Source of the DNA: Mobula birostris
Taxonomy: Eukaryota
Assembly (NCBI RefSeq): GCF_030028105.1
Contig: NC_092374.1
Location: forward strand, 204,996,724 to 205,047,323
Length of the DNA: 50,600 nucleotides
Reading direction: 5' to 3'
Made by a program: the position numbers and the translations under genes. This document shows, piece by piece, positions 11,550-45,110 of this stretch. A model generated the notes under the pieces. The model saw only the letters and a list, made by a program, of their open reading frames with translations. It did not search any database and was not told the DNA's origin. Position 1 is the first letter of the stretch. Each line of letters opens with the position of its first letter.

Positions 11550-12064
11550 TCAAAGGGGGGAGATCTTCATTTTCTCCTGTGACCCCCAAGGACTGAAGAA
11601 AGGGTACACTTTCTCAGTAAATGTGGCTCGAAATGAGTAGATGTGGGCCATGGCTTCGGCATCATATATGTGGATCTTGCCCAGGTTGTGGTCCACGTAA
11701 ACGCCAATGGTCTCAGCAGCGGCCATCCCCTCCAGCGGCGTGGGTAATTCGTCGTTGGCCTCGTACAACTGGCCACGCTTGCCGACGGTCCAGATCCTGT
11801 TATCGGGGCTCAGGGTGACCCAGTCGTTCTTGGGGATGGACGCGTAGGCCGCCCCCAGGTCCCAGTCGGGCTTGTTACCCACCGACACCTCCCAGTACTG
11901 CCTGCCGCTGTCGTAGCCCTGGCAGGCCATCACGAAGAGCCTGGCGTTGAAGCGCTTGGAGTTGTCCTTTTTCTCGTTCCACTCTTCGGTGAACGAGACA
12001 CTCAGCTGGTCGTCTGAGATGACCAGGTACGGGTTGGCAGTGTCTGGGTCAAAGGTGATCGACA
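11550..12064 (-). CDS. BTN-like terminal exon 12: B30.2 (PRY-SPRY) domain
   Basis: Acceptor cctcctcttccctcag|TG and TGA at 11552..11550. Motifs [36 protein letters not shown] and KVYPFF. Confidence 0.96.
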
Positions 12065-15000
12065 CTGAGGGAAGAGGAGGAGACCGGAGGTTAGGCCTAC
12101 CTAGTTTCCAGCAGAACTAGTGCACCAGCCCAGAGCCCGGCTCCAGGCTTTCCTGGTTCATCCTCCCCGGTGACAGCCCCAGCCAGTCTGCGGCCGTCCT
12201 CCACCGCACAAACCCCTGTGCCACCGTTCCACACCCCCCCAGCCCCAAATCTGTCTCAACAGCACTCAGCCCCCCGCCCCCCAACACTCACCCCTCCCTC
12301 TTTCAGCCCCTGCCTCCCGGCATGGCTCCTCCCACAGGACACGGACACCTTCCCACCCAGCCCCTTTACCCCAGCTCAGACCCGCCTCCCAAGCAGCACA
12401 CGCTCTGCCCCGAAACGCCTGAATGGAACATCCTAGAAAAAGTCGTGGATACGGCCGAGTCTGTCAAGGGTAAAGCCCTCCCCCCTCCCCGTTGAGCACA
12501 TCTACGCGAGAAGGCAGCATCAAGGATCCCTACCGCCCAGGCCAGGCCCTCATCTCACTGCTGTCATCAGGCAGGAGGTACAGGAGCCTCAGGACCCACA
12601 CCGCCAGGTTCAGGAACAGTTATTACCCCTCAACCAGCAGGAACCACCACCCAGGCCAGGCTCTCTTCTCGCTGCTGTCATCAGGCAGGAGGTACAGGAG
12701 CCTCAGGAATCCCACCACCAGGTTCGGGAACGGTCATTACCCCTCGGTCACTGGGCTCTTGAACCAGAGGGGATAATTTCACTCGCCCCAGCACTGAACT
12801 GTTCCCACAACCTATGGACTCACTTTCAAGGACTCTTCATCTCATGATCTCGATATTTATTGCTCATTTATTATTATTTTTCTCTCTTTTTGTATCAGCA
12901 GTTTGTTGTCTTTTGCACATTGGTTGTTTGGCTGCCTTGCTAGATACAGTCTTTTACTAATTCTATTACTTTTCTTTGTACTTATTGTGAAGGGCCACAA
13001 GAAAATGAATCTGAGGGTTGTGTCTGGTGATACACATGAACTTTGATAATGAATTGACTTTGAACTGAACGCACACCTCCTGTTCCCCATGACGAACACA
13101 CCCCAACGATGGCACCCCCTCCTCCCCTCCCCACCGATGGCATCCCCACCCTCCGCTCTTCCCATCTCCAGCTCTTCCTGCAAAGGGAAGCCCACCAGGT
13201 TATGACTATGCCGGAATATTGGGTCAGCTCGAGTTATCAACAAAACGGCACTCACCTGCGGCGACAATGACTCTCTCTGCGGCTGAAAACACAAAGAAAC
13301 CAGAGTTGAACTATCTCCAAACCAACCACCTCAGCCTGGGGTACACGTGCCCCACCCCGAAAACAGCTCTGTCACGCTGAAGGGTTTGGTAGGATTGCAA
13401 GTGAAATGTGCCATTTGTATTCGTGACCAACACAGTCCGAAGATTGTGCTGGGCAGTCTGTAAGTGAGGCCATACTTCCAGTGCCAACAACGCATGCCCA
13501 CAGCTACACGAGCCCTAACCCATGCGTCTTTGGAATGTGGGAGGGAACAATGTGAACGTACAAACTCCTGACAGACAGCGGTGGGAATCGAACCCCACTG
13601 CTAAGCATTTTGCTAGCCACCATGCTGGGTGAGTCAGTGTCAGACAGCTGTTCCTTCACCGATGGGAGAAAGTTCTCTCCCCACCACGGTGCAGGAAATC
13701 TTTCAGATTTCTCACAGTGAGATGGCAGCTCTGCAGGCCTAACGCTTCCTGTATAGAACACAGGAACAGGCCATTCGGCCCACAATGTTGTGCCGATCCA
13801 ATGAAATTAGTCATCAAAAGGGCAACTGAACTAATCCCTTCTGCCTACACAATGTCCGTATCCTTCCATTTTCCTCACATTCATGTGTCTATCTCAACAT
13901 CTTTTAAAGTCTCCAGTGTACCTGCCTCTCCCATCACCCCAGGCAGAGTATTCCAGGCACCTACCACACTCTGTGTAAAAAAAAAACCCTGCCCCTCACA
14001 TCTCCTTTGAAATTTCCCCCTTCTCATCTTAAGTAAATGTCTTCTGGTATCAGACATGGAAAAAGTTACTATCTGTCTACTCCATCTAATTAAAGGCATC
14101 CATTAGTCTTGCAAGATCTTGGATTTGCGCCTTGGAAGGTTTCCAGGGCGCAGGCCTGGGCAAGGTTGTATGGAAGACCGGCAGTTGCCCATACTGCAAA
14201 TCTCCCCTCTCCACGCCACCGATGTTGTCCAAGGGAAGGGCATTAGGATCCATACAGCTTGGCACCAGTGTCGTCGCAGAGCAATGTGTGATTAAGTGCC
14301 TTGCTCAGGGACACGTTGCCTCGGCCAAGGCTCGAAACCACAACCTTCAGGTCGCTAGTCCAATGCCTTAACCACTTGGCCATGTGCCCACTACTTACTC
14401 CATATATGCCTTTCATAATCTTATAAACCTGTATCAGATCTCTCAGCCTCTGTTGATGAAGTGAAACCAACCTAAGTTTGTCCAGCCTCTCGTTATAATC
14501 CAGGCAGAATCATGGTCAACCTCTTCTGCACCCTCTCCAAAGCCTCGACATCTTTCCTATAATGGGGAGACCACAACTGTATGCAACACTCCAGCTGGGG
14601 CTGCTGGGGTGACATTGGGGGCTCAGGGTCATTTCATTTAGCTTCTGTCTGTGCAGCGTGAGAAGGAGGTTCCCCAGTTGCGATGTGGAATCCCCCTCAA
14701 CCCAAGTCAGAGGAGATTTACCAGAATGCTGCCTGGATTAGAGAGCAGGTCCTATGAGGGCAGGTTGAGCGAGCCAGGGCTTTTCTCTGTGAAGCAAAGG
14801 AGGATGAGGTGAAGACGATAAGAGACATTGATTGAGTGGGCAGCCAGAGACTTTTCTCGCAGGGTGGAAAGGACTAATACGAGAGGGTATAATTTTACAG
14901 CAATCCGAGGAATGTATGGAGGGATGGGATAAGACCCCCCACCCCACAGAGCGTGATAAGTGCGTAGAACACGCTGCCGGGGTGGTGGTTGAGGCAGGTA

Positions 15001-18000
15001 CATTTGGGACATTTAAAAGAGTCTTAGACAGACACGTGGATGATATAAAAAATGGAGGGCAATGTGGAATGTAAGAGATCTTAGAGTAGTTTAAAAGGTC
15101 AGCACAGTGGCTGTACTGTGCTGTACTATTCAACGTTCTAAGTTCTGAATACACCCCTCCCAGGACGCCCAGCATTACACACTCCGTTAGCAGGAGGGGA
15201 CTGAAGACCGACACTTTCACTTTGTGGAAACTGCAGATATCAGCTTTGGGTATGGCAGATGAACATCAGTTCAGCACTGGCCCAAGGAGAAATCCACCCC
15301 CACCCGCCAAAGGTCTTTAGAACAGACATCTCTGGATGTACTGTCTCCATTGAAGATGGTTCTGTCAGTTCAAGTTCAAGAGCTTAGTGTGGGGCTTTGT
15401 TCTCAGCTCCACAGTGTGCCAGAGAACCAGAGCGTCCCAGAGGCTCACTCCAGGCTAGCGACAGTCTGTGACGTTTGAGACCTTACCTTCTGTGGACAGT
15501 GTCGTCTCCAGATCTGTAACAAAAGAGATGAGATTTCGGTTAACGAAACACCAGATTGTTATGGCTCAGCACAAGCTCAGTCAGCTCTGCTCCATCATAA
15601 AGGACGCCCACCAGCCAGGCTTTGTGCTCGTCTCGCTGCTGTCACCATCAGGCAGGAGGTACCACAAATAACCCACACACCATGAACCGCAGAGTCTGCA
15701 GAAGTGAGGGCACAGACACCAGCCAGTTCAGCACCGAGCCAAGCAGAAAGTCCGATGGCTGCAGGTCACAGCCACGGTGCCAGTTCAGGACCGAGGGAGA
15801 CGGACCAGGAGCCCGATGGCTGCAGGTCACAGCCACGGTGCCAGTTCAGGACCGAGGGAGACGGTCCAGGAACCCGATGGTTCTGTGGCTGTGGCCTGCA
15901 ACCAGTTCAGGACCGAGGGAGACGGTCCAGGAGCCCGATGGCTGCTGGTCACAGCCACGGAGCCAGTTCAGGACTGAGGGAGACGGACCAGGAGCCCGAT
16001 GGCTGCAGGCCACAGTGGCAGAGTCTTCAGGGTGCTGCTCTCCCCAGTGACTCTAGATTGTCCCCTAGGTGCTCCAATTTCCTCCCACAACCTTCATAAA
16101 TCAAAGCATTGAGTACAGCAGCTGGGATGTTACATTGAAGTCGGTGACACTGGTGAGGCCTAATTTAGATATTTTGTGGAGTTGCAGTCACCTACCCACA
16201 GGAAATATATCAGTAAGTGAAAGAGTACAGACGTTGCTGGCACTACAGGAGCTGAGTCACAGGAAAAGGATGGATAGGTCAGGACTTCATGTTGTACTCC
16301 CCAATCAGGGCCAGTCACAAGTTCCAAGAATCCACTCCCAGCTCCCAAGAAATCAGGAGCAAAAGCAGAGACAGTACAGGAAGAAAATTAAATTAGGTTA
16401 ACACATGAGGAGCAGTTGATGTCTCTGGACCTGTACTCACTGGAGTTTAGAAGAATGAGGAGGGAGGGGTAATCACTGAAACCTATCGAATACTGAAAGC
16501 CCTGGATACAGTGGATGTGGAGAGGATGTTTCCTATAGTGGGGGAGTCTAGGACCAGAGGGCACAGATAGAGTGGATGTGGAGAGGATGTTTCCTATAGT
16601 GGGGGAGTCTAGGACCAGAGGGCACAGATACAGTGGATGTGGAGAGGATGTTTCCTATAGTGGGGGAATTAGGACCAGAGGACACAGATAGAGTGGATGT
16701 GGAGAGGATGTTTCCTGTAGTGGGGAAGTCTAGGACCAGAGGACACAGATAGAGTGCATGTGGAGAGGATGTTTCCTGTAGTGGGGGAGTCTAGGACCAG
16801 AGGGCAGAGACAGAGTGGATGTGGAGAGGATGTTCCCTATAGTGAGGGAGTCAGCATAGTAGGACCAGAGGGCACAGCCTCAGAATAGAGGGACATCCAT
16901 TTAGAACAGATATGAGAGGGAGTTTCTTTAGCCAGAGAGTGGTGAATCTGTGGAATTCATTGCCACAGACAGTTGTGGGGACAAAATCATTGAGTATATT
17001 TAGATAAGAGGTTGATAGGTTCTTGATTAGTCAGGGCATCAAAGGTTATGGGGAGAAGGCAGGAGAATGGGGTTGAGGTGGTTAATAAATCAATCCTGAT
17101 GGAACAGCAAAGCAGACTCGATGGGCTGAATGGCCTTATTCTACTCCTATATCTTAAATCAATCCCCCACACTAGTCAAGAGCAACTTACCATAATTATT
17201 CTGGGCACTTTCTGGAATGAAACAAGAAAGAAAAAGAACAATTAATTCCACTGTGATCATTGGAGAGGAGAAATACAGTTTGGAACTTGACAAAAAATTA
17301 GCTTTTCATTGACCTTACATCTGACCAGCCTGAATCCCGGGGTCCCAGGTTCCACCTGCAGGACACATTCCCAGACTGGCAGTGCCCATGTTTCACACTG
17401 CTGCTGGACTTTCAATCAAAACCAGTGCGAAGGAACAGATCAGTCCCACCCTAGCTACTCTACATCAGCTTCCTCATCTTTCAGAATTGATCTTGAGATT
17501 CTCTTACTTGTTGTTAAAGCTCTCAAAGATCTGGTCATGGCTGAAATTAACTCCTGTCTCATCACGGACCTGGACCTACTGTAATCTGGCTACCGTCGTT
17601 ACAGAAAAGGCAAAGATCCCATTGACTCTTCATGTGGCCTTGGATCACGTGGACTATATAAATACCTTTGTCAGGATGCTGCTTATTGACTACATCTCAG
17701 TGTTTAACACAATCATTCCTACAGTTCTAATTGAAAAACTCCGTAAGCACCTCCTGTAACTGGATCTTTGACTTTCTAACCGGAAGGCCACAACATGTGC
17801 GGAAATAACATCTGCACCTTGCTGACGGTCAACACTGGGGCACCTCAGTGATGTGTGCTTAGCCCACTGCCCCACTCTCTCTCTACGCTCATGACTGTGT
17901 GGCCGGGCACAGCTAAAATGCCATCCACAAAACTTCTGGGCAGTGTCTTTACAAGACGGGTGACCGCAGCTCTTCAGAGGTTGCCTGCCTGGTGTCAGTG

Positions 18001-21000
18001 GTCACATAACCAGGACTTGTGATATGTACCGGCTGCTCATATGGCCATCCACCACCTGATCTCATGGATTCACGTGACCCTGATCAGTGGGGATGGCGGG
18101 GTGGAAGTGGTTTGGTGCTAAGCTGGTGCTACACCTTGTCCAAGGGTGACTTGTAGGCTAGTGGAGGGAAGGAGCATCTTACGTCTCCTTTGCCCTCTAC
18201 AGTCACCTCTAAACACACATCAGAGGGGCCGCACACACCCAATTATCATTGGCAAAATCGACAGACAACCAACACTATGCATTGCAATGTACAGCTGCCA
18301 CGAAACATCAAATTTCACAACAAGTGCGGGTGCTGTTAAGCCCGATTCTGATTCTGAACACACAGTTAAAGTCAGTGACCCATGGAACATGCTGATAGAG
18401 TCCCCAGCAACAGGATAACATCCCCTCCGGAGATGTGGATACACGTCTGTTTCATCAATAAAACTCACCCGTAAGGGTTTTCAGATTTTCTGAAATTAAA
18501 AGAGAAAGATGTTAAAATGAGCATCAAAACACTGAGATCTCAGCCTTGTCCTTCCCTGCCCTGCCCACACATGCGTCCTCTGTTAGAAAGCCGAACCATC
18601 AGCAACTTCAACTCAATACGCCCCACAAGAGGATCCCCATGGTAAATTAACCCTAACTGTAATGAACCGGGCTGTCATCCCAAGACTTGGGCCTTCCCCT
18701 GGAGAAGGTGGTACTGAACTGCCTTCTGGACATGAGGTAATCTTTCTAGCTGAAGGTGCTCCCGCAGTGCTGCTGGCGAGGGACTTCCTGGGTGAAAGAG
18801 GAACACAGAACAGTACAGGCCCTCTGGCCTACCATGTTGTGTCAACCCTTTAACTTTGACCTCCAAGATCAATCTAACCCTTCCCTCCCGCATAACCCCC
18901 CATTTTTCTTTCACCCATGTGCCTCTTAAATGCTCCGAATGAACTTGCCTCGCCTCTAGCGCCACTCCAGGCAGGCAGCATGTTCCACACACCCACCACA
19001 CTTTCCTCCAAACACCTGAAATTGATGGCCCCGCGTTCGTCCCTGGGAAAGTCCCCTCATTATAGGAAGGATATGGAAGCTTTACAAAGGAGATTTACCT
19101 GGATGCTGCCTGGAGCACGCCTTATGAGGATGGGTTGATAGAGGTGTACAAGACGATAAGAGGCGTAGATAGGGTGGATAGCCAGAGACTTTTCCCCAGG
19201 GCGGAAATGGAATAACTGTAAGGCGATTGGAGGGAAGTATGGGAGTGGGGGATAAATCAGCGGTAGCTTTTGTTTTAGACACAGGGAGCGGAAAGAGTGT
19301 GGCAGCTACACGAGGGACATAGATAGGCAGATGGTCGATAGAGAAATGGAGGGTTGTGTGGAAGAGAAGGATTTGATTAATCTTGGAGTGGCACAACTGT
19401 GGACTGAGGGGCATGTACCGTTCCCTGATCTGCCTGTCTGGACTAAGATGGCATCACGTTCGGAGCCCTGAACAATGCTCGATGTCGTACTGGACCCTAT
19501 CTACACGTCAAGAGGAAAACTCCAGATGATGCAGGAAGAACTTCAGCCTCTTACCTATTTCGTTGATTATGGACTCATATTCTGCAAGAACAGAAAAGTA
19601 GTGTCAAAAGCAAGCCGTTAGTAACAACTGATTACAGTTGAGTACAGTACTTTACAAAGCAAAGTAATATGATGGGCAACCATTTTAACCCCTATCCCCA
19701 TTCCCACGATCGGTCCATGGCCTCTTTTTACATGATGAGGCCACACTCAGGTTGCAGGAGCAACACCTCCTATTCCACCTGGGTAGCCCCCAACCTGAGA
19801 GCATGAACATCAATTTCTCCTTCCAAATTTTTATTTCTCTCCTTCTCTCTTTCCTCTTCTATCTGCCATTTCAGCCTCTTACTACTTCACCTCACTTTTC
19901 TAACATCTCCGCCTGCTGCCCCTCCTCCTTTCTTCTCTCCCATGGTCCACTCTCCTCTCCCATCAGATTCCTTCTTCTCCAGCCCTTTACCTTTTGGGAG
20001 GAACCAACTCGAAGGTTCCACCTATCACCTTCCAGCTAGTCCTCCAACCCCCCCACCCCCACTTTTTTATCTGGTATCGTCCCCTTTCCTTCCCAGTCCC
20101 GGTGAAGGCTCCCAGCAGAAACACTGAATGCTGATTCATTTCCATAGGATGCTGCCTGGCCTGCTAAGTTCCTCCACAATCTTGGTGTGCGCTGCTCTGG
20201 ATTTCCAGCAGCTTAATGTGAAAAAGACTAAGGAGCTGGTGGTAGGCCTGAGGAGAGCTAAGGTACCAGTGACCCCTGTTTCCATCCAGGGGGTCAGTGT
20301 GGACATGGTGGAGGATTACAAATATCTGGGGATACGAATTGACAATAAACTGGACTGGTCAAAGAACACTGAGACTGTCTACAAGAAGGGTCAGAGTCGT
20401 CTCTATTTCCTGAGGAGACTGAGGTCCCTTAACATCTGCCGGACGATGCTGAGGATGTTCTACGAGTCTGTGGTGGCCAGTACTATCATGTTTGCTGTTG
20501 TGAGCTGGGGCAGCAGGCTGAGGGTAGCAGACACCAACAGCATCAACAAACTCATTCGTAAAGCTAGTGATGTTGTGGGGATGGAACTGGACTCTCTCAC
20601 AGTGGTGTCTGAAAAGAGGATGCTGTCTAAATTGCATGCCATCTTGGTCAATGTCTCCCATCCACTACATAATGTACTGGGTGGGCACAGGAGTACATTC
20701 AGCCAGAGACTCATTCCACCGAGATGCAGCACAGAGCGTCATAGGAAGTCATTCCTGCCTGTGGCCATCAAACTTTACAACTCCTCCCTTGGAGGGTCAG
20801 ACACCCTGAGCCAATAGGCTGGTCCTGGACTTATTTCAATAATTTACTGGCATAATTTACATATTACTATTTAACTATTTATGGTTCTGTTACTATTTAT
20901 TATTTATGGTGCAACTGTAACGAAAACCAATTTCCCCCAGGATCAATAAAGTATGATTATGACTATGACTATCTGCAGAATCTCATGGCAATATTTTCTT

Positions 21001-33000: not shown

Positions 33001-36000
33001 CGATGTTTGTCAATGTTCTGGGACCTCTACTTTCCATGATTTTTATTAACGACCTGGATGTGGGGGTAGAAGGGTGGGTTGGCAAGTTTGCAGACGACAC
33101 AAAGGTTGGTGGTGTTGTGAGTAGTGTAGAGGATTGTCAAAGATTGCAGAGAGACATTGATAGGATGCAGAAGTGGGCTGAGAAGTGGCAGATGGAGTTC
33201 AACCCGGAGAAGTGTGAGGTGGTACACTTTGGAAGGACAAACTCCAAGGCAGAGTACAAAGTAAATGGCAGGATACTTGGTAGTGTGGAGGAGCAAAGGG
33301 ATCTGGGGGTACATGTCCACAGACCCCTGAAAGTTGCCTCAGAGGTGGATAGGGTAGTTAAGAAAACTTATGGGGTGTTAGCTTTCATAAGTCGAGGGAT
33401 AGAGTTTAAGAGTCGCGATGTAATGATGCAGCTCTATAAAACTCTGGTTAGGCCACACTTGGAGTACTGTGTCCAGTTCTGGTCACCTCACTATAGGAAG
33501 GATGTGGGAGCATTGGAAAGGGTACAGAGGAGATTTACCAGGATGTAGCCTGGTTTAGAGAGTATGCATTATGATCAGAGATTAAGGGAGCTAGGGCTTT
33601 ACTCTTTGGAGAGAAGGAGGATGAGAGGAGACATGATAGAGGTATACAAGATATTAAGAGGAATAGATAGAGTGGATAGCCAGCGCCTCTTCCCCAGGAC
33701 ACCACTGCTCAATACAAGAGGACATGGCTTTAAGGTAAGGGGTGGGAAGTTCAAGGGGGATATTAGAGGAAGGTTTTTCACTCAGAGAGTGGTTGGTGCG
33801 TGGAATGCCCTGCCTGAGTCAGTGGTGCAGGTAGATACACTAGTGAAATTTAAGAGACTACTAGACAGGTATATGGAAGAATTTAAGGTGGAGGGTTACC
33901 TGGGAGGCAGGGTTTGAGGGTCGGCACAACATTGTGGGCTGAAGGGCCTGTACTGTTCTATGTACTATATTCTCAACTATGGTATTAATGAATTTGTGGC
34001 TAAATTTGCTGATGATACAAAGATAGGCGGAAGAGTGAGTAGTGTTGAGGAAACAGAGAACCTACAGAGAGACTTAAATAGTTTAGGGGAATGGGCAAAG
34101 AAGTGGCAAATGAAATACAATGTTGGAAAGTGTATGGTTATGCACTTTGGTGGAAGAAATAAACAGGCAGACTATTATTTAGATGGGGAGAGAATTCAAA
34201 ATGCAGAGATGCAAAGGGACTTGGGAGTCCTTGTGCAGGATACCCTAAGGGTTAACCTCCAGGTTGAGTCGGTTGTGAAGAAGGTGAATGCGATGTTGGC
34301 ATTCATTTCTAGAGGTATAGAATATAAGAACAGGGATGTGATGTTGAGGCTCTATAAGGCACTCATGAGACACACTTGGAGTATTGTCTGCAGTTTTGGG
34401 CTCCTTATTTTAGAAAGGATATACTGACATTGGAGAGGGTTCAGAGAAGATTCACGAGGATGATTCCAGGAATGAAAGGGTTACCGTATGAGGAACGTCA
34501 GGCAGCTCTTGGGCTGTATTCCCTGGAGTTCAGGAGCATGACGGGGGGATCTCATAGAAACATTCAGATTGTTAAAAGGTCTGAACAGATTAGATATGGC
34601 GAAGTTATTTCCCATGGTAGGAGATGCTAGAACAAGAGGGCATGACTTCAGGATTGAAGGACGTCAGTTTAGAACAGAGATGCAGAGAAATTACTTAGTC
34701 AGAGGGTGGCAAATCTGTGGAATTTGTTGCCACGAGCGGCTGTGGAGGCCAAGTCATTGGGTGCGTTTAGGGCAGAGATAGATAGGATCTTGATTAGCCA
34801 GGGCATCAAAAGGTATGGGGTGAAAGCAGGGGAGTGGGGGTGACTGGAAAAATTGGATCAGTTCTTGATTGAATGGCAGACTCGATGGCCCGAATGGCCT
34901 ACTTCTGATCCTATATCTTATGGTCTTATGTCTTGAATGTTCCTAATGTATCTGCCTCCACCACCACCCCCCAGCAAGGCATTCCGTGCACCCACCACTG
35001 TCCGTGTTTAAAAAACCTACCCCTGACATCCCTCCCAACTATATTTTCCTCAAATTACCTTTTTAAAATTATTCCTCCTTGTATTAGCCGTTTCTACCCT
35101 GAGGAAAAGCACTTGATCTATGCCTCTTTTAAAGTCACCTCTCATCCTCCTTTGCTCCTAAGCGAAAAGCTCTAGCTCACTAAACCTTTCCGCATAAGAC
35201 GTGCTCTCCAATCCAGACAGCATCCCGGTAAACCTCCTCTGCACCCTCTCTAAAGCTTCCACATTCTTCAGATAGGAGCTGACCAGAAATGAACGTGTGG
35301 TCTAACCAGAGTTTTATAGAGTTGCAACGTTACCTCGCGGCTCTTGAACGCGATCCCCCAACTAATGAAGGCCAACCCACCGTACGCCTTCTTAACCACC
35401 CTATCCACTTGACTCGATGGACGTGGACCCCCAGATCCCTCTGTTCCTCCACACGGCTAAGAATCCTGCCATTATCCTGCCTTCCAATTCGACCTTCCAA
35501 ACTGACACACCTCCGGATTCTCAGTCCAGCTTTGCATCCTGCACGTTCTGTTGTAACCGACGGCAGCCTCCCGGACTGTCCGCACCACCACCTCCACTCA
35601 GCGGTAGGTTGAGCTATCACTCAATGAGGGTGAGAGGTAGAAGATGACAAGTGGACAACCAAAGGCTTTTTCCACAGGCCGGAAATGGCCAAATCAAGGG
35701 AACTCAATTTTAGGGTGATGGGAGGGCAGTATAGGGGGGGACATCCGAGGAAGTTCTTCACACAGAGAATGGTGAGCACATGGAACGTCCTACCAGAGGT
35801 GGTGGTAGAGTGAGATACAACAGGGATATTTAAGAAACCCTCACAACACGCTGGAGGAACTCAGCAGGTCGGGCAGCATCCGTGGAGACGATCAGTCAAC
35901 GTTTCAGGCCGGAACCCTTCGTCAGGACTGTAGAGGGAAGGGGCAGAGGCCCTATAAAGAAGGTGGGGGGAGGGTGAGAAGGAGAAGGCTGGTAGGTTCC

Positions 36001-39000
36001 AGGTGAAAAACCAGTAAGGGGAAAGATAAAGGGGCGGGGGAGGGGAAGCAGGGAGGTGATACGCAGGAAAGGTGAAGAAGGAATAGGGGAAAACACAATG
36101 GGTAGTAGAAGGAGGTGGAACCATGAGGGAGGTGATAGGCAGCTGGGGTAGGGGGCAGAGTGACATAGGGAGAGGGGAAGGGAGGGGGAGGGAATTACCG
36201 GAAGTTGGAGAATTCAATGTTCATGCCAAGGGGCTGGAGACTACCTAGACGGTATATGAGGTGTTGCTCCTCCATCCTGAGTTTAGCCTCATCGTGGCAG
36301 TAGAGGAGGCCATGTATGGACATATCTGAATGGGAGTGGGAAGCAGAGCTGAAATGGAAATTGAAGGGATATGTAGGAGACTCTTAGGCACAAGGATGAA
36401 AGAAAAATGCAGGGCTATGTACAAAATGAGGATTAAATTGATCTTAGAGTAGGTGAAACAGAAAATGTACAACAGCACAGGATCAGGCCAGAATGTTGCG
36501 CCAGCCCAGTTAAATTAGCAATCAAGTGGCCAGCACTGTGGGCCATAGGGCCTGCGCTGTTCGATGTTATCAAGTTGGCACAGCTCGGAACCACATCCAT
36601 CTTTAGGCAAGTATCACCGAGACTGTCCTGAGCAGTTGCATCACTGTCTGGTACGGGAATCGCCAGGCCCACCAGGGTTTCCCTTCCACCCACCACGGGA
36701 ATCACCAGGCCCACCAGGGTTTCCCTTCCACCCACCACGGGAATCGCCAGGCCCACCAGGGTTTCCCTTCCACCCACCACGGGAATCGCCAGGCCCACCA
36801 GGGTTTCCCTTCCACCCACCACGGGAATCGTCAGGCCCACCAGGGTTTCCCTTCCACCCACCACGGGAATCGCCAGGCCCACCAGGGTTTCCCTTCCACC
36901 CACCACGGGAATCGCCAGGCCCACCAGGGTTTCCCTTCCACCCACCACGGGAATCGCCAGGCCCACCAGGGTTTCCCTTCCACCCACCACGGGAATCACC
37001 AGGCCCACCAGGGTTTCCCTTCCACCCACCACGGGAATCACCAGGCCCACCAGGGTTTCCCTTCCACCCACCACGGGAATCGCCAGGCCCACCAGGGTTT
37101 CCCTTCCACCCACCACGGGAATCGCCAGGCCCACCAGGGTTTCCCTTCCACCCACCACGGGAATCACCAGGCCCACCAGGGTTTCTCTTCCACCCACCAC
37201 ATCTTCACCATCAGCGCTGTGTGTGCAGGGGCCTCAGCATCGGCAATGATCCCTCCCATCAGTCCAGCAGACCCCTCCATCAGGCAGAATGTTCTCAGAA
37301 CTGCTCTTTCTCCCAGACTGTGTGGCTACCGGGACTCCCAGCCACCACCCATGTCTCACCACGTAATGAAACATCAGTAGCATTACACTGTTCACTTTCT
37401 ACCTCGTGTCAAAAATGCACCTTAACATTTGCTAACTTATTTACGGTAGTACTACTTTGGGGAGGAGATGTATCTCTACCGAGGAGAGATACAAGGTGCT
37501 ACTTCCATCCGCTACCCTGCAGCTCACCCTTGGCCAAGGTGAAACAACCGCTTAGTCCCCTGATCAGGGTCCCATGCAGGCATGGAAGCCGGTGGTGGAC
37601 GGTCATAGAAGCATATCACAAGACCACTAACGCCAGGCAGACAATCTCTGAAGAGTATTGACGACGGCTGGGGGGGGGGGGGGGGGGGTTGTCACCCATC
37701 TTATAAAGGCACTGCCCAGAAAGTGGCAATGGCAAACCACTTCTGTAGAAAAGTTTGCTAAAAACAATAATGGTCATGGAAAGACCATGACTGCCCATGT
37801 CATACAACATGGTACATGAAGATCAAATAAATGTTATCTTGTGTGTTATTTGTGTGAGTTACATGTACTGTATTGTGTACCTTGCTCCAGAGGAGCATTG
37901 TTTCGTTTGACGGTACACGTGTATGGCCGAATGACAATAAATTGGACTTGAACTTCCCCCAGCCTGCTACATGCGACAATGCCGTATCTGTTGGGTTGCA
38001 GATTCACCGAGCTGCATGAGACCGGTTGTGATGACACCACAGCCTCTCTCCTGACCTGCCAGTGGCATTCACCCAGGCACCATCCCCCGGTTTATGCCCA
38101 CAGTGCCCTCTCCCCACCACCAGTTCGCTCCTCGTCTCTGGACTGACCTGGGATCCTCAGCCTGGACGTCAGCACCTTCAGCGTGCCGGCCTTCACCCTG
38201 CACTTGACGTCGGTCATGTCACTCATCACCTTCAAGGTGCTGGCAATGCGGTAGAAGCCATCTGGGTCCTTTGTCATCTGGGACTCAGCCTTCACCTCCT
38301 GCTCCCCGCTTCTGGTCCACTGAATACTGGGTTTGGGGTACCAGCCAGAGGAGCTGCACTTGATCTTGATCCTGTTGCCTTGGTAACCTTCCAAACGAAT
38401 GGAAGGTTGAAGGCCCAGGCCTGTGAAGAGGCAAATCAGGTTTAGTATCACTGACATTTGTTGTGAAATTTGTTGTCTTGCCGCAGCAGTACAGTCAGTG
38501 CAAGACGTAAAAATCACTATCAATTAAAATAAGAATCTATGTTAAAAAAAACATAGCAAAATAGTGAAGTGGTGTCCGTGGACCTTTTAGAAATGTGATG
38601 GTGGAGGGGAAGAAGCTGGTCCTAAAACATGTCTTCATGTGTGTCTTCGGGCTCTTATACCTCCTGCTTTTTTAAAAAAATTATTGTGTTCTTTATCTTG
38701 TTGTGTTTTATTTAGTGCCGCATGGAATCCAGTGTAATTGTTATTTCATCTGTGTACTGGAAACAACACTGAACGATCTTGAATCTCCTCCCTGATGTAG
38801 AATGTCACCACCTTGAGGCATCGCCTTTTGAAGGTGTCCTGGATGCTGAGGAGGCTCGGGGCCCACGAGGGAGCAGGCCGCGTCTGTATCCTCTGCAGAC
38901 TGGCTGCCTCGCTGCCTGGTATGGAGGGGCCACTGCGCAGGATCGGAAAAAGCTGCAGAATGTTGTAAACTCAGACAGCTCCATCGAGGCCACCAGCCAC

Positions 39001-41289
39001 CCCGCCTTTCAAAAGGCAATGACTCAGATTTGCAGCATCCACCATTAAGGGCCTTCACCGTCCAGGACATGCCCTGTTCTCATGTTACCACCTAAGAGGA
39101 GGTACAGGAGCCTGAGGAGAAGGCCAGAATGAATTAAATTGGGGGAAAAGAGAGGTTTGGAGATGCAGGGAGGGAGGGAGAGGGTTGTCAAGATGGGTTG
39201 ATATGGGGGAGAGAGATATGGGATGTGTATGATCTTGCACTTTGGTAGAAGGAATAGAGGCCTAGACTACTTTCTAAACAGGGAGAAAATTCAAAGAGAC
39301 TTGTGAGTCCTCGTGCAGGATGAACTTGCAGGTCAAATTAGCAGCAGGGAAGGCAAATGCAACGTTGGCATTTACTTTGAGAGGACTGAAATAAAAGAGC
39401 AAGGATATACAAGGGATTGGTCGGACCACATGGAGTATCAAGAGCAATTTTGGGCCCCAGAAACGATGTGTTGGCATTGGAGAGGGTCGAGAGGTTGTTC
39501 ACAGGAATGATCTTGGGAGACAAATATTAGATTAGAGAGGAGGTTGGGACAGAGACAAGGTATCCGAGAAACTTACTGGAAACCTTCAGTGAAACGACAG
39601 CCTGCTCGGGGACTCTGTTATACTCCACCATACACAAGTATTCCCCCTCATCGGCCAGCCGCACACCACTCAACCTGAGCGAGACATTGCCCTTCTGGAA
39701 GTCGTCCTTGAAGAGCTCGGTGCGGCCCCGGTAAGCCTCGTCCTGGCCCTCCACAACATCCTTGCCGTTGCGGTACCGGTGGACGACGGTGCTCGCCTTG
39801 GTGTCACTGCGCATCCAGCGTATCTCCATGCTGGGTGGCATGTTCTCCGGGACCAGCTGACACTCCAGGACAGCCACGCTCTGAACCATGGCCGCGACGG
39901 CCTGCGCCGGCCCCGTGACCTTGAACTGTTCTACCCTCTCTGTCGTGGGAGAGAGGAGAGAAGCAGGTGTGTTATCCTCACGGATACTCGAGCAATGATA
40001 CACAAAGGGTGAGCGCGCTATACAGCAGGCAATTAGGAAGGCTGGTTTTGGGGGGGGGGTAGCAGTTGGCATAATGCTTGACTGTAAGGGCTTTATATGT
40101 TCTCCCTATGACCATGTGAGTTTCTTCTGGTTACCCCCCGCAGTCCAAAGACGTACTGGTTACTAGGTTAATTGGTCATGGCTGTAATTGGGTAGCACAA
40201 GTTCGAACGGCCTGTTACCCAGCAGTATCTTGGGATATTCAGGATAGATAAAAATCCTGAGGAAGGGACTCAGCCTGAAATGTCGACCATTTATTCCTCT
40301 CCATACAGGCTGCCTGACCTGCTGAAGTTCTCCAGGATTCTGCGTGTGGCCTTTACTTTTAATATTTTCAGTCAGATGACTATAAACTTGAAACTTGAAA
40401 AGCAAGTAAGAAAGAGGAATAGGAGCCGGCCAATCTATAACAGGCCCCTCCTGCCCAACGAGGCCGTACCACCCAATTACAACCATGTGACCCACGAATC
40501 TACTAACCCGTACATCTCTGGGACGTGGGAGGGAACTGGGGCACTCAGAGGTGGTCACAGGGAGAACGTATTTCCAGAAAGAACCTGCTCCGCAATGTCA
40601 CCAAGACAAAGGAAGTGGTTGTCGACTTCAGAACTCACCCCCATCACATCCCTTTTTCACATGCACGGCACAGCAGTGGAAACTGTGAGCGGTTTCAAAC
40701 TCCTGGGAGCGCACGTCTCACACAACCTCTCGTGGTCCCAGGACACATCGTACGCAATCGGGAAAGCTCACCAACACCCCTGCTTTCTGAGGGGAGCGGG
40801 TCTTTGCACATCTATACTCATGTCATTCTACAGATGAGTAGCAGAGAGCATCCTAACAAGATGCATCACTGCTTGCGGTGGAACCTGCAGTGCAGCGGAC
40901 TCTACAACCGGTAGTCAGAACTGCCCAGTGCATCACTGGCACCTATCAACAATGCATATCCAGAAAGGTGCCAGAAACAACCAGAGTCTAAGGACAGTCC
41001 GCCACTGCCACCACAGCACACGCACAACTCACCAATCCTAATCGGTACATATATGGGACATGGGTGAAAACCAGACAACCTGGTGGAAATACAAACTCCT
41101 TACAAGCAGCAGTGGGAATTGAAACCTGCGCAATAACGTGACTGAATTAACCGTACGCTGCTGTGCCGCCATGAGAGAGGACTTCAGAAAATGGCATCAC
41201 TCACGGGTGCAGGTGAAGTAGATCCTACAGAAGAGCAGGATTAGAGTCCAGCGTATCTTCCATCTACCCATCTCTCTTCGCATCAGCAT
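11550..41289 (-). CDS. Butyrophilin-like (BTN/BTNL family) type I membrane protein, 501 aa: SP-IgV-IgC-TM-heptad linker-B30.2. join(complement): 41205..41289, 39577..39939, 38148..38420, 26846..26965, 24963..24989, 19555..19581, 18469..18489, 17191..17211, 15487..15513, 13256..13282, 11550..12064
   Basis: All 11 coding exons have pyrimidine-tract+AG acceptors, and all but the terminal exon have GT donors. All junctions are phase 1. Lengths sum to 1506 nt (502 codons) with no internal stop. Domain order and motifs (QFKVTGP..LECQL..IRW..DEGEYLC; [10 protein letters not shown]; DEFFPR+TM; [17 protein letters not shown]) match the butyrophilin family. Orthology to a specific mammalian BTN cannot be assigned. 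Confidence 0.93.
12430..13070 (+). mobile_element. Rex1/Babar 3' fragment with a ~114-bp internal tandem duplication (units at ~12536 and ~12650)
   Basis: [19 protein letters not shown] occurs twice, followed by the 3' UTR. Confidence 0.75.
13256..13282 (-). CDS. BTN-like micro-exon 11 (27 nt, AAERVIVAA)
   Basis: gtttctttgtgttttcag|...|GTGAGT, phase 1-1. Occupies the position of the short exon that precedes the B30.2 exon in BTN genes. Confidence 0.87.
13740..14595 (-). mobile_element. CR1 3' fragment interrupted by a SINE
   Basis: [17 protein letters not shown] and [13 protein letters not shown] on the minus strand, either side of 14095..14390. Confidence 0.75.
14095..14390 (-). mobile_element. 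tRNA-derived SINE
   Basis: Minus strand starts gggcacaTGGCCAAGTGGttaagg (A box) ... GTTTCGAGCC (B box), then a gtgtccctgagcaaggcacttaa conserved SINE body and a non-tRNA tail. Confidence 0.8.
15487..15513 (-). CDS. BTN-like micro-exon 10 (27 nt, DLETTLSTE)
   Basis: ctcttttgttacag|...|GTAAGG, phase 1-1, open frame. Confidence 0.83.
15722..16015. repeat. 61-bp minisatellite, ~4.8 copies
   Basis: Unit ccgatggctgcaggtcacagccacggtgccagttcaggaccgagggagacggaccaggagc; one copy carries an internal inversion. Confidence 0.92.
16395..17155 (+). mobile_element. CR1 3' fragment containing an expanded minisatellite
   Basis: [18 protein letters not shown]..; continues to the CR1 tail after the tandem array. 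Confidence 0.8.
16505..16875 (+). repeat. ~61-bp minisatellite, ~6 copies, derived from CR1 ORF2 ([18 protein letters not shown])
   Basis: agtggatgtggagaggatgtttcct variants at ~16510, 16571, 16632, 16692, 16753 and 16814. Confidence 0.92.
17191..17211 (-). CDS. BTN-like micro-exon 9 (21 nt, ESAQNNY)
   Basis: ttctttttctttcttgtttcattccag|...|GTAAGT, phase 1-1, heptad-sized. Confidence 0.87.
17600..17920 (+). mobile_element. Rex1/Babar RT fragment
   Basis: [29 protein letters not shown]. Confidence 0.75.
17935..18195 (-). repeat. Short dispersed repeat (SINE-like; reverse copy of 37490..37815)
   Basis: Reverse-complement similarity to 37490..37740. Confidence 0.6.
18469..18489 (-). CDS. BTN-like micro-exon 8 (21 nt, ENLKTLT)
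   Basis: ctttctcttttaatttcag|...|GTGAGT, phase 1-1, heptad-sized. Confidence 0.87.
19555..19581 (-). CDS. BTN-like micro-exon 7 (27 nt, QYESIINEI)
   Basis: cttttctgttcttgcag|...|GTAAGA, phase 1-1, open frame. Confidence 0.85.
19690..20210 (+). mobile_element. Penelope-like 3' fragment
   Basis: [34 protein letters not shown] plus the tail/pLTR segment. Confidence 0.8.
20212..20970 (+). mobile_element. Rex1/Babar LINE, 5'-truncated, with an uninterrupted C-terminal ORF
   Basis: [49 protein letters not shown]; (atgact)n tail. Confidence 0.9.
21860..23470 (+). mobile_element. Penelope-like element with an internal deletion of the RT core
   Basis: [10 protein letters not shown] and [14 protein letters not shown], then a jump past motifs B/C; [25 protein letters not shown]; tail. 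Confidence 0.88.
24285..24850. repeat. Unclassified ~560-bp non-coding dispersed repeat, copy 2
   Basis: Colinear similarity with 29500..30050 (ggggtttactcccaaag, ggtttgagatcaga, gtttt(t)aaggtgcca, ggttgtcaga). Confidence 0.75.
24963..24989 (-). CDS. BTN-like micro-exon 6 (27 nt, ELYKRPTLE)
   Basis: cctgtctgttctcttccag|...|GTAAGT, phase 1-1, open frame. Confidence 0.85.
25100..25610 (+). mobile_element. Penelope-like 3' tail fragment
   Basis: ..[12 protein letters not shown] plus the pyrimidine-rich tail. Confidence 0.75.
26081..26352. repeat. 30-bp minisatellite, 9 copies, in a LINE 3' UTR
   Basis: agtt(t/c)tgtgttgtttca at 26091, 26121 ... 26331 with an exact 30-bp period. Confidence 0.92.
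26570..26790 (+). mobile_element. tRNA-derived V-SINE/HE1-like SINE
   Basis: gggttcaattccc B box plus the gtttgtacgttctccccgt..gtgggtttcc..gtccaaagac body. Related copies at ~8420, 13500, 40050, 40400, 41040 and 42560. Confidence 0.7.
26846..26965 (-). CDS. BTN-like exon 5: transmembrane exon (120 nt) [40 protein letters not shown]
   Basis: Acceptor cctctccccag|AT and donor AGT G|GTAAGC. A ~22-aa hydrophobic span followed by a basic RKR stop-transfer. xxFFPR is the usual BTN post-IgC motif. Confidence 0.92.
27150..27720 (-). mobile_element. CR1 3' fragment
   Basis: [21 protein letters not shown] on the minus strand, plus the CR1 tail. Confidence 0.75.
27798..29409 (+). mobile_element. Full-length (1612 bp) Tc1-family DNA transposon, IR/DR type, transposase inactivated
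   Basis: ~215-bp TIRs (27798..~28012 and ~29195..29409) starting CAGTG and ending CACTG+TA, each with inner and outer direct repeats. Transposase remnants [38 protein letters not shown] and AAKGTSTKY-stop (29191). Start codon mutated and premature stops present. Confidence 0.93.
29500..30050. repeat. Unclassified ~560-bp non-coding dispersed repeat, copy 3
   Basis: Colinear with 24285..24850. Confidence 0.75.
30230..33015 (+). mobile_element. Long CR1 LINE (ORF1 SGNH-esterase + endonuclease + RT), 5' part of an interrupted copy
   Basis: ORF1 [23 protein letters not shown]; endonuclease ISETWL, VYRPPN, VGDFN and DHNMIEF; [22 protein letters not shown] and NYRPVSL. Confidence 0.93.
33016..33973 (+). 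mobile_element. Second-subfamily CR1, 5'-truncated, nested inside the previous CR1
   Basis: Resembles the 49650..50600 subfamily ([23 protein letters not shown]); ends in a ctatgt-type tail at ~33973. Confidence 0.85.
33974..34925 (+). mobile_element. 3' remainder of the interrupted CR1
   Basis: Resumes at [20 protein letters not shown], matching the 4160..5070 subfamily. Confidence 0.87.
34925..35500 (-). mobile_element. CR1 3' fragment
   Basis: [16 protein letters not shown] on the minus strand. Confidence 0.7.
35837..36350 (-). mobile_element. Penelope-like 3' fragment inserted in a CR1 tail
   Basis: Reverse complement of the [31 protein letters not shown] segment and tail. Confidence 0.8.
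36655..37200. repeat. 42-bp minisatellite, 13 near-identical copies, inside a Rex1 remnant
   Basis: Unit gggaatcgccaggcccaccagggtttcccttccacccaccac; 13 x 42 = 546 bp. Confidence 0.96.
37490..37815 (+). repeat. SINE-like repeat with an RTE-type tail
   Basis: atggcaaaccacttc..gaaaa tail resembles RTE/Bov-B 3' ends (recalled, not searched); second copy at 17935..18195. Confidence 0.55.
38148..38420 (-). CDS. BTN-like exon 4: IgC domain (273 nt)
   Basis: Acceptor ctcttcacag|GC and donor CCA G|GTCAGT. Contains the [15 protein letters not shown] motif typical of BTN/B7 IgC and a second Cys in VKCRVK. Confidence 0.93.
39577..39939 (-). CDS. BTN-like exon 3: IgV domain (363 nt)
   Basis: Acceptor ctctcctctctcccacgacag|AG and donor TCC A|GTAAGT. 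Ig C..W..C triad (LECQL, IRWMR, DEGEYLC), a BTN-type HRYRNGKD...YRGRTELF segment, and an N-glycosylation sequon NVS. Confidence 0.95.
40580..40980 (+). mobile_element. Rex1/Babar fragment
   Basis: [25 protein letters not shown]. Confidence 0.75.
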
Positions 41290-41304
41290 TAAACCAATGG
41301 ATCC
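41205..41304 (-). CDS. BTN-like exon 2: 15 nt UTR plus signal peptide [28 protein letters not shown] (CDS 41289..41205)
   Basis: Acceptor ttttttgctctgttgcag|GGATCC and donor ACC C|GTGAGT (phase 1). Basic n-region followed by a hydrophobic core. In-frame ATGs at 41289, 41283 and 41271; the last (GAGATGG) has the best Kozak context. Confidence 0.8.
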
Positions 41305-41319
41305 CTGCAACAGAGCAAA

Positions 41320-42559: not shown

Positions 42560-42759
42560 CTTAATTTAGAGATAAAGTACAGTAACAGGCCCTTCGGGTC
42601 TTACAAGCCTAAAGCACCCAATTTCATCCACGTGAGCAATGAACCGACTAACCCGTGTGTCTTTGGAATGCTGGCGGAAACCGGACCACCGGCAAGAAAC
42701 ACATGCAGTCACGTGCAGAACGTACCAAGTCCTTCCGCTAATCATACCACCCAATCCGT

Positions 42760-43660: not shown

Positions 43661-43694
43661 AGTTAAGACAGGAAGGGAAGGAATTATATTGACT

Positions 43695-43965: not shown

Positions 43966-44310
43966 TAAACATAGAAACATAGAAAACCTACAGCACAATA
44001 CAGGCCCTTCGGCCCACTAAGCGGTGCCAAACATGTCCCTACTGTAGATATTACTAGGCTTAGCAATACATAGCCCTCTATTTTTCGAAGCTCCATGTAC
44101 CTATCCAAAAGTCTCTTAAAAGACCCTATTGTATCCGCCTCCACCACCGTTACCGGCAGCCCATTCCACGCACTCACCACTCTCTGAGTAAAAAACTTAC
44201 CCCTGACATCTCCTCTGTACCTGCTCCCCAGCACCTTACACCATTTCAGTCCTGGGAAAAAGCCTCTGACTATCCACACGATCAATGCCTCTCATCATTC
44301 TATACACCTA
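43966..44310 (-). mobile_element. CR1 3' fragment
   Basis: [31 protein letters not shown] with an (atgtttct)n-type tail. Confidence 0.85.
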
Positions 44311-44319
44311 AACGATTCA

Positions 44320-45110
44320 TGCGGAGTCGCTGCGAGCAGCTGATGAAGGAGTGGAAAGAGATTTACTTCCCAACTCTCTCCACACCACACTCCAGTCCGG
44401 CTGGTGACGGTAAGGCTCCTTGAAGTTGGACTGCGAACCTCCATCAAAAGTCAAAAGAAGGTTCTCGATTTGTCGGGGCATCAAAGGCGGGGAATGGGTT
44501 TAAACGGATAATAAACCAGCGATGATGAAATGGCGGAGCGGAGCCGACCCGAGGTGCCGAATTCTGTTCATGTGTCCGATGGAACCGGCCGGAGTCCGGC
44601 CGGCAGACCCCGGCCCGGTCCCGGGGACAACGCCTCGGCCCGAGGTAACCATTCGGCCCATACTCACCTGCTGGGGGAACGGCGGCCTCTCTCCGTGCGA
44701 GTGCGAGATGAGGGCCTTCCGGGACTTCTTTAGTTTCACTTTGCGAGCGGGCCGCAGGGCGGAATCGGGCTCCCCGCGATCAGAAACGGCCGGGGCCCCG
44801 TCCGGCCGACCCCCTCAGCGGCAGCTTAAACATCTCCGTCCCGGCACTACGCTGTCGACTGCAGAGCCGCCGCTCTCCCCGGAGAAAGAGCCACAGCCGC
44901 GGCGGCGGTCGCTCTCTCCTCTCCCTCTCCCTCTGCCACTTCCGCAACCACTGCCCGGATCGTCACAAAGTCCAGAGACCGCTGTTGCGCTTCAGTCGGC
45001 GTCCCCGTCACCGAAAAACCCCGACTCCGGGTACGGAGCGAATACAGGCGCGGCCGCCGGGCATCGAGGGAACCAGAACTGTCACCTTTCAGATCGTAGA
45101 GATAATCGTT
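44320..45110. promoter_or_regulatory. CpG island, probable promoter of the BTN-like gene
   Basis: Sharply raised GC and CpG density relative to the CpG-depleted surroundings, not recognisable as a TE, and contains the exon 1 donor. Confidence 0.7.
44668..44820 (-). other. Putative non-coding exon 1 (5' UTR) of the BTN-like gene; 5' end not determinable
   Basis: Consensus donor CAG|GTGAGTA at 44668/44667 inside a CpG island. No ATG in frame with exon 2, and an in-frame TGA at 44817..44815. Exon 2 has a good acceptor upstream of its ATG, so an upstream exon is implied. Confidence 0.6.

Follow-up and report, generated by a model that had tools for sequence, protein, structure and literature searches.

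An intact, transcribed butyrophilin-type gene in repeat-rich DNA of a manta-type ray

The 50.6-kb stretch of DNA analyzed here (the window) carries on its minus strand a butyrophilin-type gene of a manta-type ray that codes for an immune surface protein and is both intact and transcribed. It is very probably a functional representative, in this ray, of an old butyrophilin gene present across elasmobranchs and coding for a type I membrane glycoprotein of 495-501 aa. Its domains follow in the order signal peptide, IgV, IgC, transmembrane (TM) segment, six micro-exons (27-27-21-21-27-27 nt), and PRY-SPRY (B30.2). We found no second gene within the window. The call is sound, but it is not a discovery, because annotations of this gene exist for many sharks and rays: full-architecture butyrophilins have been automatically annotated in at least 10 of their species, and a paper of 2026 describes butyrophilins across jawed vertebrates, including the stingray Hypanus sabinus, placing those of chondrichthyans on the MHC class I chromosome (PMC12841164). 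An earlier note on this DNA had thus recognized a full-architecture elasmobranch butyrophilin correctly while overstating its novelty. It had also supposed that the function is uncharacterized, and indeed none of the elasmobranch BTN3A1/A3-like proteins compared here has been studied experimentally. Exact coordinates can now be given for the butyrophilin of a manta-type ray:

44400..45199, no strand: CpG island, likely promoter region (CpG observed/expected 0.95-1.15, GC 0.53-0.70)
44668..44850, minus: probable non-coding first exon (5' UTR); donor CAGCAG/GTGAGT at 44668, upstream end not defined
41205..41304, minus: leader exon, 15 nt of 5' UTR and signal peptide; coding 41289-41205 (85 nt)
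39577..39939, minus: IgV exon, 363 nt; Pfam V-set; Cys55-Cys131, N113 motif
38148..38420, minus: IgC exon, 273 nt; Pfam C2-set_3; Cys171-Cys223
30294..34630, plus: decayed LINE (endonuclease and reverse transcriptase), antisense to the gene, in the 11.2-kb IgC-TM intron
26846..26965, minus: TM exon, 120 nt; IPDEFFPR stalk motif, TM helix 250-273, RKR
24963..24989, minus: micro-exon 1, 27 nt; encodes (E)LYKRPTLE; pyrimidine tract, cag acceptor, gtaagt donor
19555..19581, minus: micro-exon 2, 27 nt (27 nt in sawfish); splice score 10.0
18469..18489, minus: micro-exon 3, 21 nt (21 nt in sawfish); splice score 11.3
17191..17211, minus: micro-exon 4, 21 nt (21 nt in sawfish); splice score 11.6
15487..15513, minus: micro-exon 5, 27 nt (27 nt in sawfish); splice score 11.9
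13256..13282, minus: micro-exon 6, 27 nt; encodes (A)AERVIVAA; splice score 11.9
11550..12064, minus: PRY-SPRY (B30.2) exon; Pfam PRY and SPRY; stop codon 11552-11550
11086..11549, minus: 3' UTR; lower end estimated from contig overhang

We rebuilt the gene model from the sequence and obtained, as claimed before, eleven coding exons that join into a stop-free frame of 501 codons (1503 coding nt). The ten coding introns are without exception GT..AG and in phase 1, and no stop, frameshift, or lost splice site was found across the eleven exons. The gene spans around 30 kb and its coding span is 5% exonic; a sequence-only reading can thus recover from repeat-rich DNA a gene with so little coding sequence and with exons of 21-27 nt. 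The range first proposed, 11550-44820, is right at its lower end, which is the stop codon, but nothing is coding at around 44820, and the first coding exon lies at 41289-41205. The leader exon is bounded by an acceptor ttgcag/GGATCC and a phase-1 donor C/GTGAGT and has in-frame methionines at positions 1, 3, and 7. It encodes a hydrophobic leader that aligns with, and by that alignment is homologous to, the leaders of the orthologues. Since the orthologues start at Met7 and this codon has the better Kozak context, translation probably starts there, giving a product of 495 aa, the length also annotated for the Mobula hypostoma orthologue. Two other starts were rejected. The ATG at 40072, in frame and directly upstream of the IgV exon, was considered as an unspliced leader and discarded because every phase-1 donor there would leave an intron of 42-48 nt and because it is the exon at 41289 that is homologous to the orthologue leaders. 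The ATG at 41050, located within a repeat, is followed 6 codons later by a phase-0 donor.

The butyrophilin identity and the domain order proposed earlier are borne out by Pfam matches to V-set (5e-14), C2-set_3 ("butyrophilin Ig-C", 2.5e-18), PRY (3e-16), and SPRY (8e-19), and by the best matches in the PDB, which are CD276, MOG, and BTN3A for IgV, BTNL8 and BTN3A1 for IgC, and human BTN3A3 and BTN3A1 for the B30.2 exon (E = 1e-33). Judged by these similarities, the ectodomain falls within the BTN/B7 group, as the note had expected. The canonical Ig cysteine pairs (Cys55-Cys131 in IgV, Cys171-Cys223 in IgC) are invariant across an alignment of 29 proteins, and IgV has an N-glycosylation motif at N113. 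A single TM helix (residues 250-273), which is the strongest hydrophobic stretch between IgC and B30.2 (Kyte-Doolittle mean 2.97), is followed by basic residues (RKR), as in a type I topology; the TM exon aligns with those of the orthologues and its IPDEFFPR stalk motif is conserved. The exon layout is that of butyrophilins, with one domain per exon, phase 1, and several very short juxtamembrane exons. Membership of the TRIM family, for which RING, B-box, and coiled-coil are expected, was rejected: the exons that precede B30.2 code for Ig domains and a TM helix, and TRIM proteins align with the B30.2 portion only. The combination of Ig and SPRY domains has been listed as a domain shuffle of gnathostome origin (PMC11788884), and our results leave unchanged the published picture in which full-architecture butyrophilins date to the ancestor of jawed vertebrates.

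The six micro-exons are not chance occurrences. Over the minus strand of the whole 50.6 kb, five open AG..GT candidates of 21 or 27 nt reach a combined splice score of at least 8, and all five lie between the TM and B30.2 exons; the sixth micro-exon, at 24989, combines a gtaagt donor with a C at -1 and falls outside these five. Its peptide (micro-exon 1) is conserved in every orthologue and its length is equal in the sawfish locus. Micro-exon 2 is collinear with the Mobula, Hypanus, and Pristis proteins, and micro-exons 3-5 are collinear with the orthologues. Micro-exon 6 has a second in-frame acceptor 6 nt downstream, at 13276; the AAERVI motif is kept in all orthologues, hence the 27-nt form is the conserved one. 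The linker had been described as made of heptads. This holds for the length of two exons, those of 21 nt, but the 3.5-residue periodicity is not significant: the a/d enrichment in the best register was equalled by 910 of 5000 shuffles, and the power at period 3.5 by 1530 of 5000. A coiled-coil dimer is therefore unsupported by the sequence alone, while a linker helix is possible because the segment has one Pro and no Gly.

Evidence for transcription comes from contigs of runs that are presumed to be RNA, which makes the contigs transcript-like. Those of runs X1, X2, X3, and X5 (1866, 1981, 2492, and 1726 nt) end their match exactly at the B30.2 acceptor, 12064, and continue for 887-1547 nt in sequence unlike the intron or the genome. 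Splicing is thus read from a break point common to four runs, and not from junctions followed base by base, the micro-exons being too short to be placed. In X1-X3, depth is 0 over the unique intron bin 12230-12429, spliced-type contigs reach a depth of 48-89 in three runs of the same organism, and a low-depth unspliced contig ends at 13255, next to micro-exon 6. Downstream, contigs cover 11230-11549 continuously with the B30.2 exon and extend 110-144 nt beyond 11230, hence a 3' UTR of at least about 430 nt. At the other end, 44668-44850 is probably a non-coding first exon within the CpG island, at best 5' UTR. The CpG observed/expected ratio is 0.95-1.15 in the island vs a window mean of 0.35, and sampled words of the exon are found at 100% in the four organism-A runs carrying the spliced transcript and at 40% in organism-B runs; no junction to exon 2 was seen. 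We had considered a coding first exon near 44820, but the frame opened by the ATG at 44833 ends after 17 codons, that of the GTG does not resemble a leader, and the segment has no usable ORF.

The surrounding DNA was aptly described as transposon debris. ORFs within the introns match RVT_1, Exo_endo_phos, and a Tc1-type HTH, and there are several minisatellites. The decayed LINE accounts for Exo_endo_phos and RVT_1 matches on the ORFs 31213-31689, 32120-33049, 32979-33548, and 33960-34427. Its host intron, between IgC and TM, measures 11.2 kb in the ray vs 765 nt in sawfish. Insertions of LINE, Tc1, and minisatellite sequences have very probably inflated the introns about three-fold relative to sawfish, leaving the exons unharmed.

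The nearest proteins are those of Mobula hypostoma, then Hypanus, Pristis, and Rhinoraja, then sharks, in agreement with the elasmobranch host suspected from the sequence. The M. hypostoma protein (P0167, "butyrophilin subfamily 3 member A3-like") is 93% identical and aligns without gaps over residues 7-501, across every junction; identity drops to 81% with Hypanus and 70% with Pristis. In sawfish (locus L001), the exons measure 67-354-279-120-27-27-21-21-27-27-515 nt and are in phase 1 throughout, in a compact gene of 10.3 kb. Hence, the 27-27-21-21-27-27 linker plan is also present in the one other locus examined. We built a midpoint-rooted tree without mammalian sequences, since a homologue search seeded with a caecilian butyrophilin yielded mainly turtles and caecilians, with no clean mammalian sequence among them. 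The window protein lies in a clade with 100/100 support, whose branching follows the species tree and which is separate from a second elasmobranch butyrophilin clade. This tree, with no mammal in it, indicates lineage-specific clades and no one-to-one orthology with a tetrapod subfamily. Other searches were less informative. The 171-aa B30.2 exon retrieved only teleost fragments, at no more than 43% identity, because of the length window; the IgV search of a representative library was dominated by multi-IgV fused models, with P0102 and P0042 as the only useful matches. The ray product itself was absent among the protein-search matches.

The gene has been under long-term purifying selection: against sawfish, the only comparison computed, dN/dS is 0.25 overall, 0.13 in IgV, and 0.20 in B30.2, with a dS of 0.75 that is high but not saturated. 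On the recent branch the picture differs. Polarizing changes with Hypanus and Pristis, we counted 24 derived amino-acid changes in the window lineage vs 8 in M. hypostoma (binomial p = 0.007), of which 7 vs 0 are in IgV, and of 8 differences from organism B listed for the last exon, 6 are non-synonymous. The manta branch is thus unusually fast, an excess that could reflect relaxed constraint in the window species. One might go further and suppose that the gene, intact by sequence, is drifting to a pseudogene, its frame open only because little time has passed. We consider this improbable: the eleven exons are undamaged, the deep spliced-type contigs of three same-organism runs speak for an active gene, the derived changes include many conservative ones (I/V, L/V, M/I), nothing has been lost among the conserved motifs, the tryptophan, and the Ig cysteines, and the long-term dN/dS is low.

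The similarity of the B30.2 domain to human BTN3A3 and BTN3A1, together with relatives named "BTN3A1-like" or "BTN3A3-like", might suggest a BTN3A1-type sensor, in which B30.2 would bind pyrophosphate metabolites and switch the ectodomain for gamma-delta T cells. In BTN3A1, phosphoantigens are held by a basic pocket of H351, H378, K393, R412, R418, and R469 (PMC4303140). These positions align to R/D/T/E/P/S in the ray B30.2, i.e., five of the six positions have lost their basic residue to a non-basic one (D, T, E, P, S), and the sixth is Arg, the residue of BTN3A3 at that position. The replacements are common to all aligned orthologues. Moreover, the mammal-free tree has no one-to-one match with a tetrapod subfamily, and butyrophilins have been called class-specific (PMC12841164). 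As judged from the aligned pocket, the ray gene is not a BTN3A1-type phosphoantigen sensor, and we give this reading hardly any credit; since the clade has no phosphoantigen pocket, its "BTN3-like" label is an artefact of similarity. Least credible of all is a false join of Ig exons and a B30.2 exon from different genes, or from a gene and a relic: these exons do lie 26 kb apart, linked by tiny micro-exons found via splice-site scoring, but the model is gapless and collinear at every junction with independently annotated proteins of four batoids, the sawfish has the identical exon plan within 10.3 kb, the contig portions that precede the B30.2 exon (1035 and 1032 nt) agree in length with upstream exons of 906 + 100 nt plus a short 5' piece, and the micro-exon candidates are confined to the TM-B30.2 interval.

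For a functional butyrophilin of this kind, mammalian butyrophilins suggest how the protein may work. The IgV-IgC ectodomain would be exposed on the cell surface and engage a lymphocyte receptor, for which the gamma-delta T-cell receptor is a candidate by the same analogy, other partners being possible. The short-exon juxtamembrane linker would position the cytoplasmic B30.2 domain, which may bind an intracellular partner that tunes or relays the interaction with the receptor; if B30.2 senses anything, it would do so by a mechanism other than the BTN3A1 basic pocket. A bolder proposal, which we think unlikely, is that this clade, taken as MHC-linked, provides some of the T cells of rays and sharks (a gamma-delta or other subset) with a ligand or selecting element encoded in the germline, with B30.2 sensing an intracellular cue that is not a phosphoantigen, and that the three-fold excess on the manta branch (7 to 0 in IgV) reflects co-evolution with a receptor V segment and not decay.

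Among known systems, the closest are the elasmobranch BTN3A1/A3-like RefSeq proteins (M. hypostoma P0167, Hypanus sabinus P0168, Pristis pectinata P0166, Rhinoraja P0169, Heterodontus P0102), which share with the ray gene the architecture, the exon plan, and conserved motifs, at identities from 93% to 51%. The ray copy differs from them by a possible N-terminal extension (Met1/Met3; three extra in-frame codons' worth), by introns far larger than those of sawfish, and by its excess of lineage-specific substitutions. The second elasmobranch clade ("BTN1A1-like / BTN2A1-like", e.g., Pristis P0182) has the same architecture but only 33-38% identity, forms its own well-supported clade, and is absent from the window; in sawfish, a gene of this clade precedes the orthologue at a distance of 6.4 kb, both reading in the same direction. 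MOG and CD276 (B7-H3) are closest in IgV sequence, with 9e-25 for MOG and 1e-29 for CD276 (summed over two IgV domains), but both are without B30.2; MOG also has no IgC, and the cytoplasmic tail of CD276, a B7 protein, is short. Human BTN3A1 and BTN3A3 differ from the ray protein in the pocket (H/H/K/R/R/R vs R/D/T/E/P/S), in the lack of visible one-to-one orthology, and in the linker, a run of 21-nt heptads vs the mixed 27- and 21-nt exons of the ray with no significant heptad periodicity. Yet they are built like it: IgV-IgC-TM-juxtamembrane-B30.2, each domain in a phase-1 exon of its own and the juxtamembrane part in short exons.

We searched the window, which has no gaps over its 50.6 kb, for domain-bearing open frames and found three large ones on the minus strand with Pfam matches. 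Splice sites in the flanks of each delimit an exon in phase 1. We scanned hydropathy across the 26 kb from the IgC to the B30.2 exon and obtained a single standout hydrophobic segment, which lies in a 120-nt exon, also in phase 1. All open AG-N-GT candidates between this TM exon and the B30.2 exon were then scored, yielding five very strong micro-exons and a sixth with a perfect gtaagt donor (27-27-21-21-27-27 nt in order). When both strands of the whole window were scored as a control, the minus-strand candidates of at least 8 all fell within the TM-B30.2 interval, and only two plus-strand candidates reached that score. The first coding exon has 85 nt (28 residues and one base) and a GTGAGT donor, and its leader aligns with those of shark and ray orthologues.

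Features of the butyrophilin gene
39527-40072, minus strand: open frame with V-set match (5e-14)
38092-38523, minus strand: open frame with match to C2-set_3, the butyrophilin Ig-C model (2.5e-18)
11550-12065, minus strand: open frame with PRY (3e-16) and SPRY (8e-19) matches
41289-41205, minus strand: first coding exon
39939-39577, minus strand: IgV exon
38420-38148, minus strand: IgC exon
26965-26846, minus strand: TM exon
24989-24963, 19581-19555, 18489-18469, 17211-17191, 15513-15487 and 13282-13256, minus strand: micro-exons 1 to 6
12064-11550, minus strand: PRY-SPRY exon

Joined, the eleven exons give 1503 nt, or 501 codons, with zero stops, across ten introns of 1.1 to 11.2 kb that are all GT..AG. 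The Mobula hypostoma protein is 93% identical to this model, its residues 1-495 aligning with 7-501 with zero gaps. This confirms the intact 11-exon, 501-codon butyrophilin described in an earlier note, with its ends corrected. That note had placed the gene at 11550-44820: the stop-codon end at 11550 stands, but the coding start moves to 41289, since no sequence near 44820 could code for a leader. The count of 501 residues needs an 85-nt first coding exon, which is what lies at 41289-41205. An acceptor 15 nt upstream of its ATG makes this exon internal. The stretch 44668-44850 is a probable non-coding first exon, because it ends in CAGCAG|GTGAGT, lies within a CpG island (observed/expected around 1.0 vs 0.35 for the window) and is fully present in the four transcript-carrying runs. 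Just upstream of the island, a 2.6-kb imperfect 26-nt purine-rich minisatellite (45313-47985, G/A on the plus strand) creates a spurious minus-strand open frame of 890 codons. The product is more likely to be 495 aa long, starting at Met7, because this codon is preceded by a purine at -3, is followed by G at +4 and is the annotated start in the Mobula, Hypanus and Pristis orthologues. At micro-exon 6, a pair of in-frame CAG acceptors spaced by 6 nt (13276-13282, minus strand) is a possible source of alternative splicing; use of the downstream one would shorten the conserved AAERVI motif by two residues.

Querying a representative library with the IgV exon retrieved a 515-aa Heterodontus protein of the same architecture, which in turn retrieved shark and ray RefSeq proteins named butyrophilin subfamily 3 member A1/A3-like. 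Identity to the model is 81% in Hypanus sabinus and 70% in Pristis pectinata, and the orthologue alignment is uninterrupted across every exon junction. The sawfish (P. pectinata) coding exons measure 67-354-279-120-27-27-21-21-27-27-515 nt, all in phase 1, so the two genes have the micro-exon plan in common. In the Pristiophorus and Chiloscyllium proteins as annotated, blocks are missing from the linker part encoded by micro-exons 2-5, either as skipped-exon isoforms or because automatic annotation overlooked micro-exons. In the sawfish locus L001 (1-3578 and 10001-20339), a butyrophilin of a second elasmobranch clade (BTN1A1-like / BTN2A1-like) is followed 6.4 kb downstream by the orthologue in the same orientation, as a tandem pair; the ray counterpart of this neighbour would fall past the window end.

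The introns of the ray gene have been inflated: the sawfish gene, with the same micro-exon plan, spans only 10.3 kb. The IgC-TM intron is 11.2 kb here vs 765 nt in sawfish, and contains a decayed LINE, a Tc1 fragment and a 42-nt minisatellite (36653-37200, 13 copies, 98% identity), the last producing long spurious open frames on both strands. Beyond the gene locus, the window holds only LINE-type reverse-transcriptase debris and the long purine-rich minisatellite. The transposon debris noted earlier was thus found.

Four small runs from one organism contain every sampled word of the last exon, against 58% in the runs of a second. We placed reads on 11230-17229. The longest contigs in the runs X1, X2 and X3 (1866, 1981 and 2492 nt, depth 48-89) cover 11230-12064, end exactly at the last-exon acceptor and extend 887, 1035 and 1547 nt further with no fit to the adjacent intron, whose unique bin 12230-12429 has zero depth in these runs. 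A contig of the second organism (B) shows the same break and extension, with 16 differences. Upstream of the last exon, the lengths of 1035 and 1032 nt are the sum of 906 nt of coding exons, 100 nt of exon 2 and around 30 nt. This looks like spliced mRNA, on the guess that the runs are RNA; the break at 12064 is the sole junction seen directly, as the micro-exons are too short for read placement. Collinear pieces of low depth around 13191-13786 resemble pre-mRNA. At its six non-synonymous differences, the organism B contig has exactly the M. hypostoma residues; hence organism B is M. hypostoma or a very close species. Intronic repeats at 12430-12830, 14030-14430 and 16430-17229 have contig depths in the tens of thousands in each of the four runs, peaking around 120,000 at 16630-16829 (X2). 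The families to which they belong are highly transcribed or else very abundant in both ray species.

By the Nei-Gojobori method, dN/dS relative to the sawfish coding sequence is 0.25 overall (IgV 0.13, B30.2 0.20, TM exon 0.29, linker 0.35, IgC 0.44); the gene has historically been under purifying selection. At 34 residues the model differs from M. hypostoma; polarised with Hypanus and Pristis as outgroups, 24 of these changes were derived on the window branch, 8 on the M. hypostoma branch and 2 were ambiguous (binomial p = 0.007), with counts of 7 vs 0 in IgV. Tree branch lengths are likewise asymmetric (0.05 vs 0.015). Since many window-branch changes are conservative (several I-to-V or L-to-V) and all structural residues are retained, we read this excess as a live gene evolving faster, not as one in decay; it may reflect positive selection or relaxed constraint.

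In a midpoint-rooted maximum-likelihood tree of 31 proteins, the window sequence pairs with M. hypostoma (support 100/99), joined in turn by Hypanus, Pristis, Rhinoraja and three sharks. This 100/100 clade mirrors the species tree and stands apart from the second elasmobranch clade and the bony-vertebrate sequences; the proposed elasmobranch butyrophilin identity is supported. With mammalian sequences absent, the tree shows orthology within elasmobranchs, kinship with a particular mammalian subfamily being outside its reach. Butyrophilins are reported to occur in all jawed vertebrates, with Hemiscyllium, Carcharodon, Hypanus and Callorhinchus named, and most chondrichthyan copies to lie on the MHC class I chromosome (PMC12841164, January 2026). 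Their pairing of Ig and SPRY is listed as a domain shuffle of gnathostome origin (PMC11788884). What is new is hence one more species in a known family, already annotated and recently published. We know of no non-mammalian butyrophilin with an established function.

The suggested domain order (SP-IgV-IgC-TM-heptad-B30.2) holds except for its heptad part: just two of the six linker exons code for seven residues, and the register and periodicity of the 51-residue linker are no better than 18-31% of shuffles. Heptad motif numbers are noted to vary in the family, which is described as class-specific (PMC12841164). The coiled-coil linker remains an analogy. The best solved-structure match of the B30.2 exon is BTN3A3/BTN3A1 (1e-33), and the RefSeq names of the relatives also point to BTN3. 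The basic phosphoantigen-binding pocket of BTN3A1 comprises H351, H378, K393, R412, R418 and R469 (PMC4303140). At these positions, however, the ray has R, D, T, E, P and S, as do its orthologues, and we therefore rejected a BTN3A1-type phosphoantigen sensor for the elasmobranch clade.
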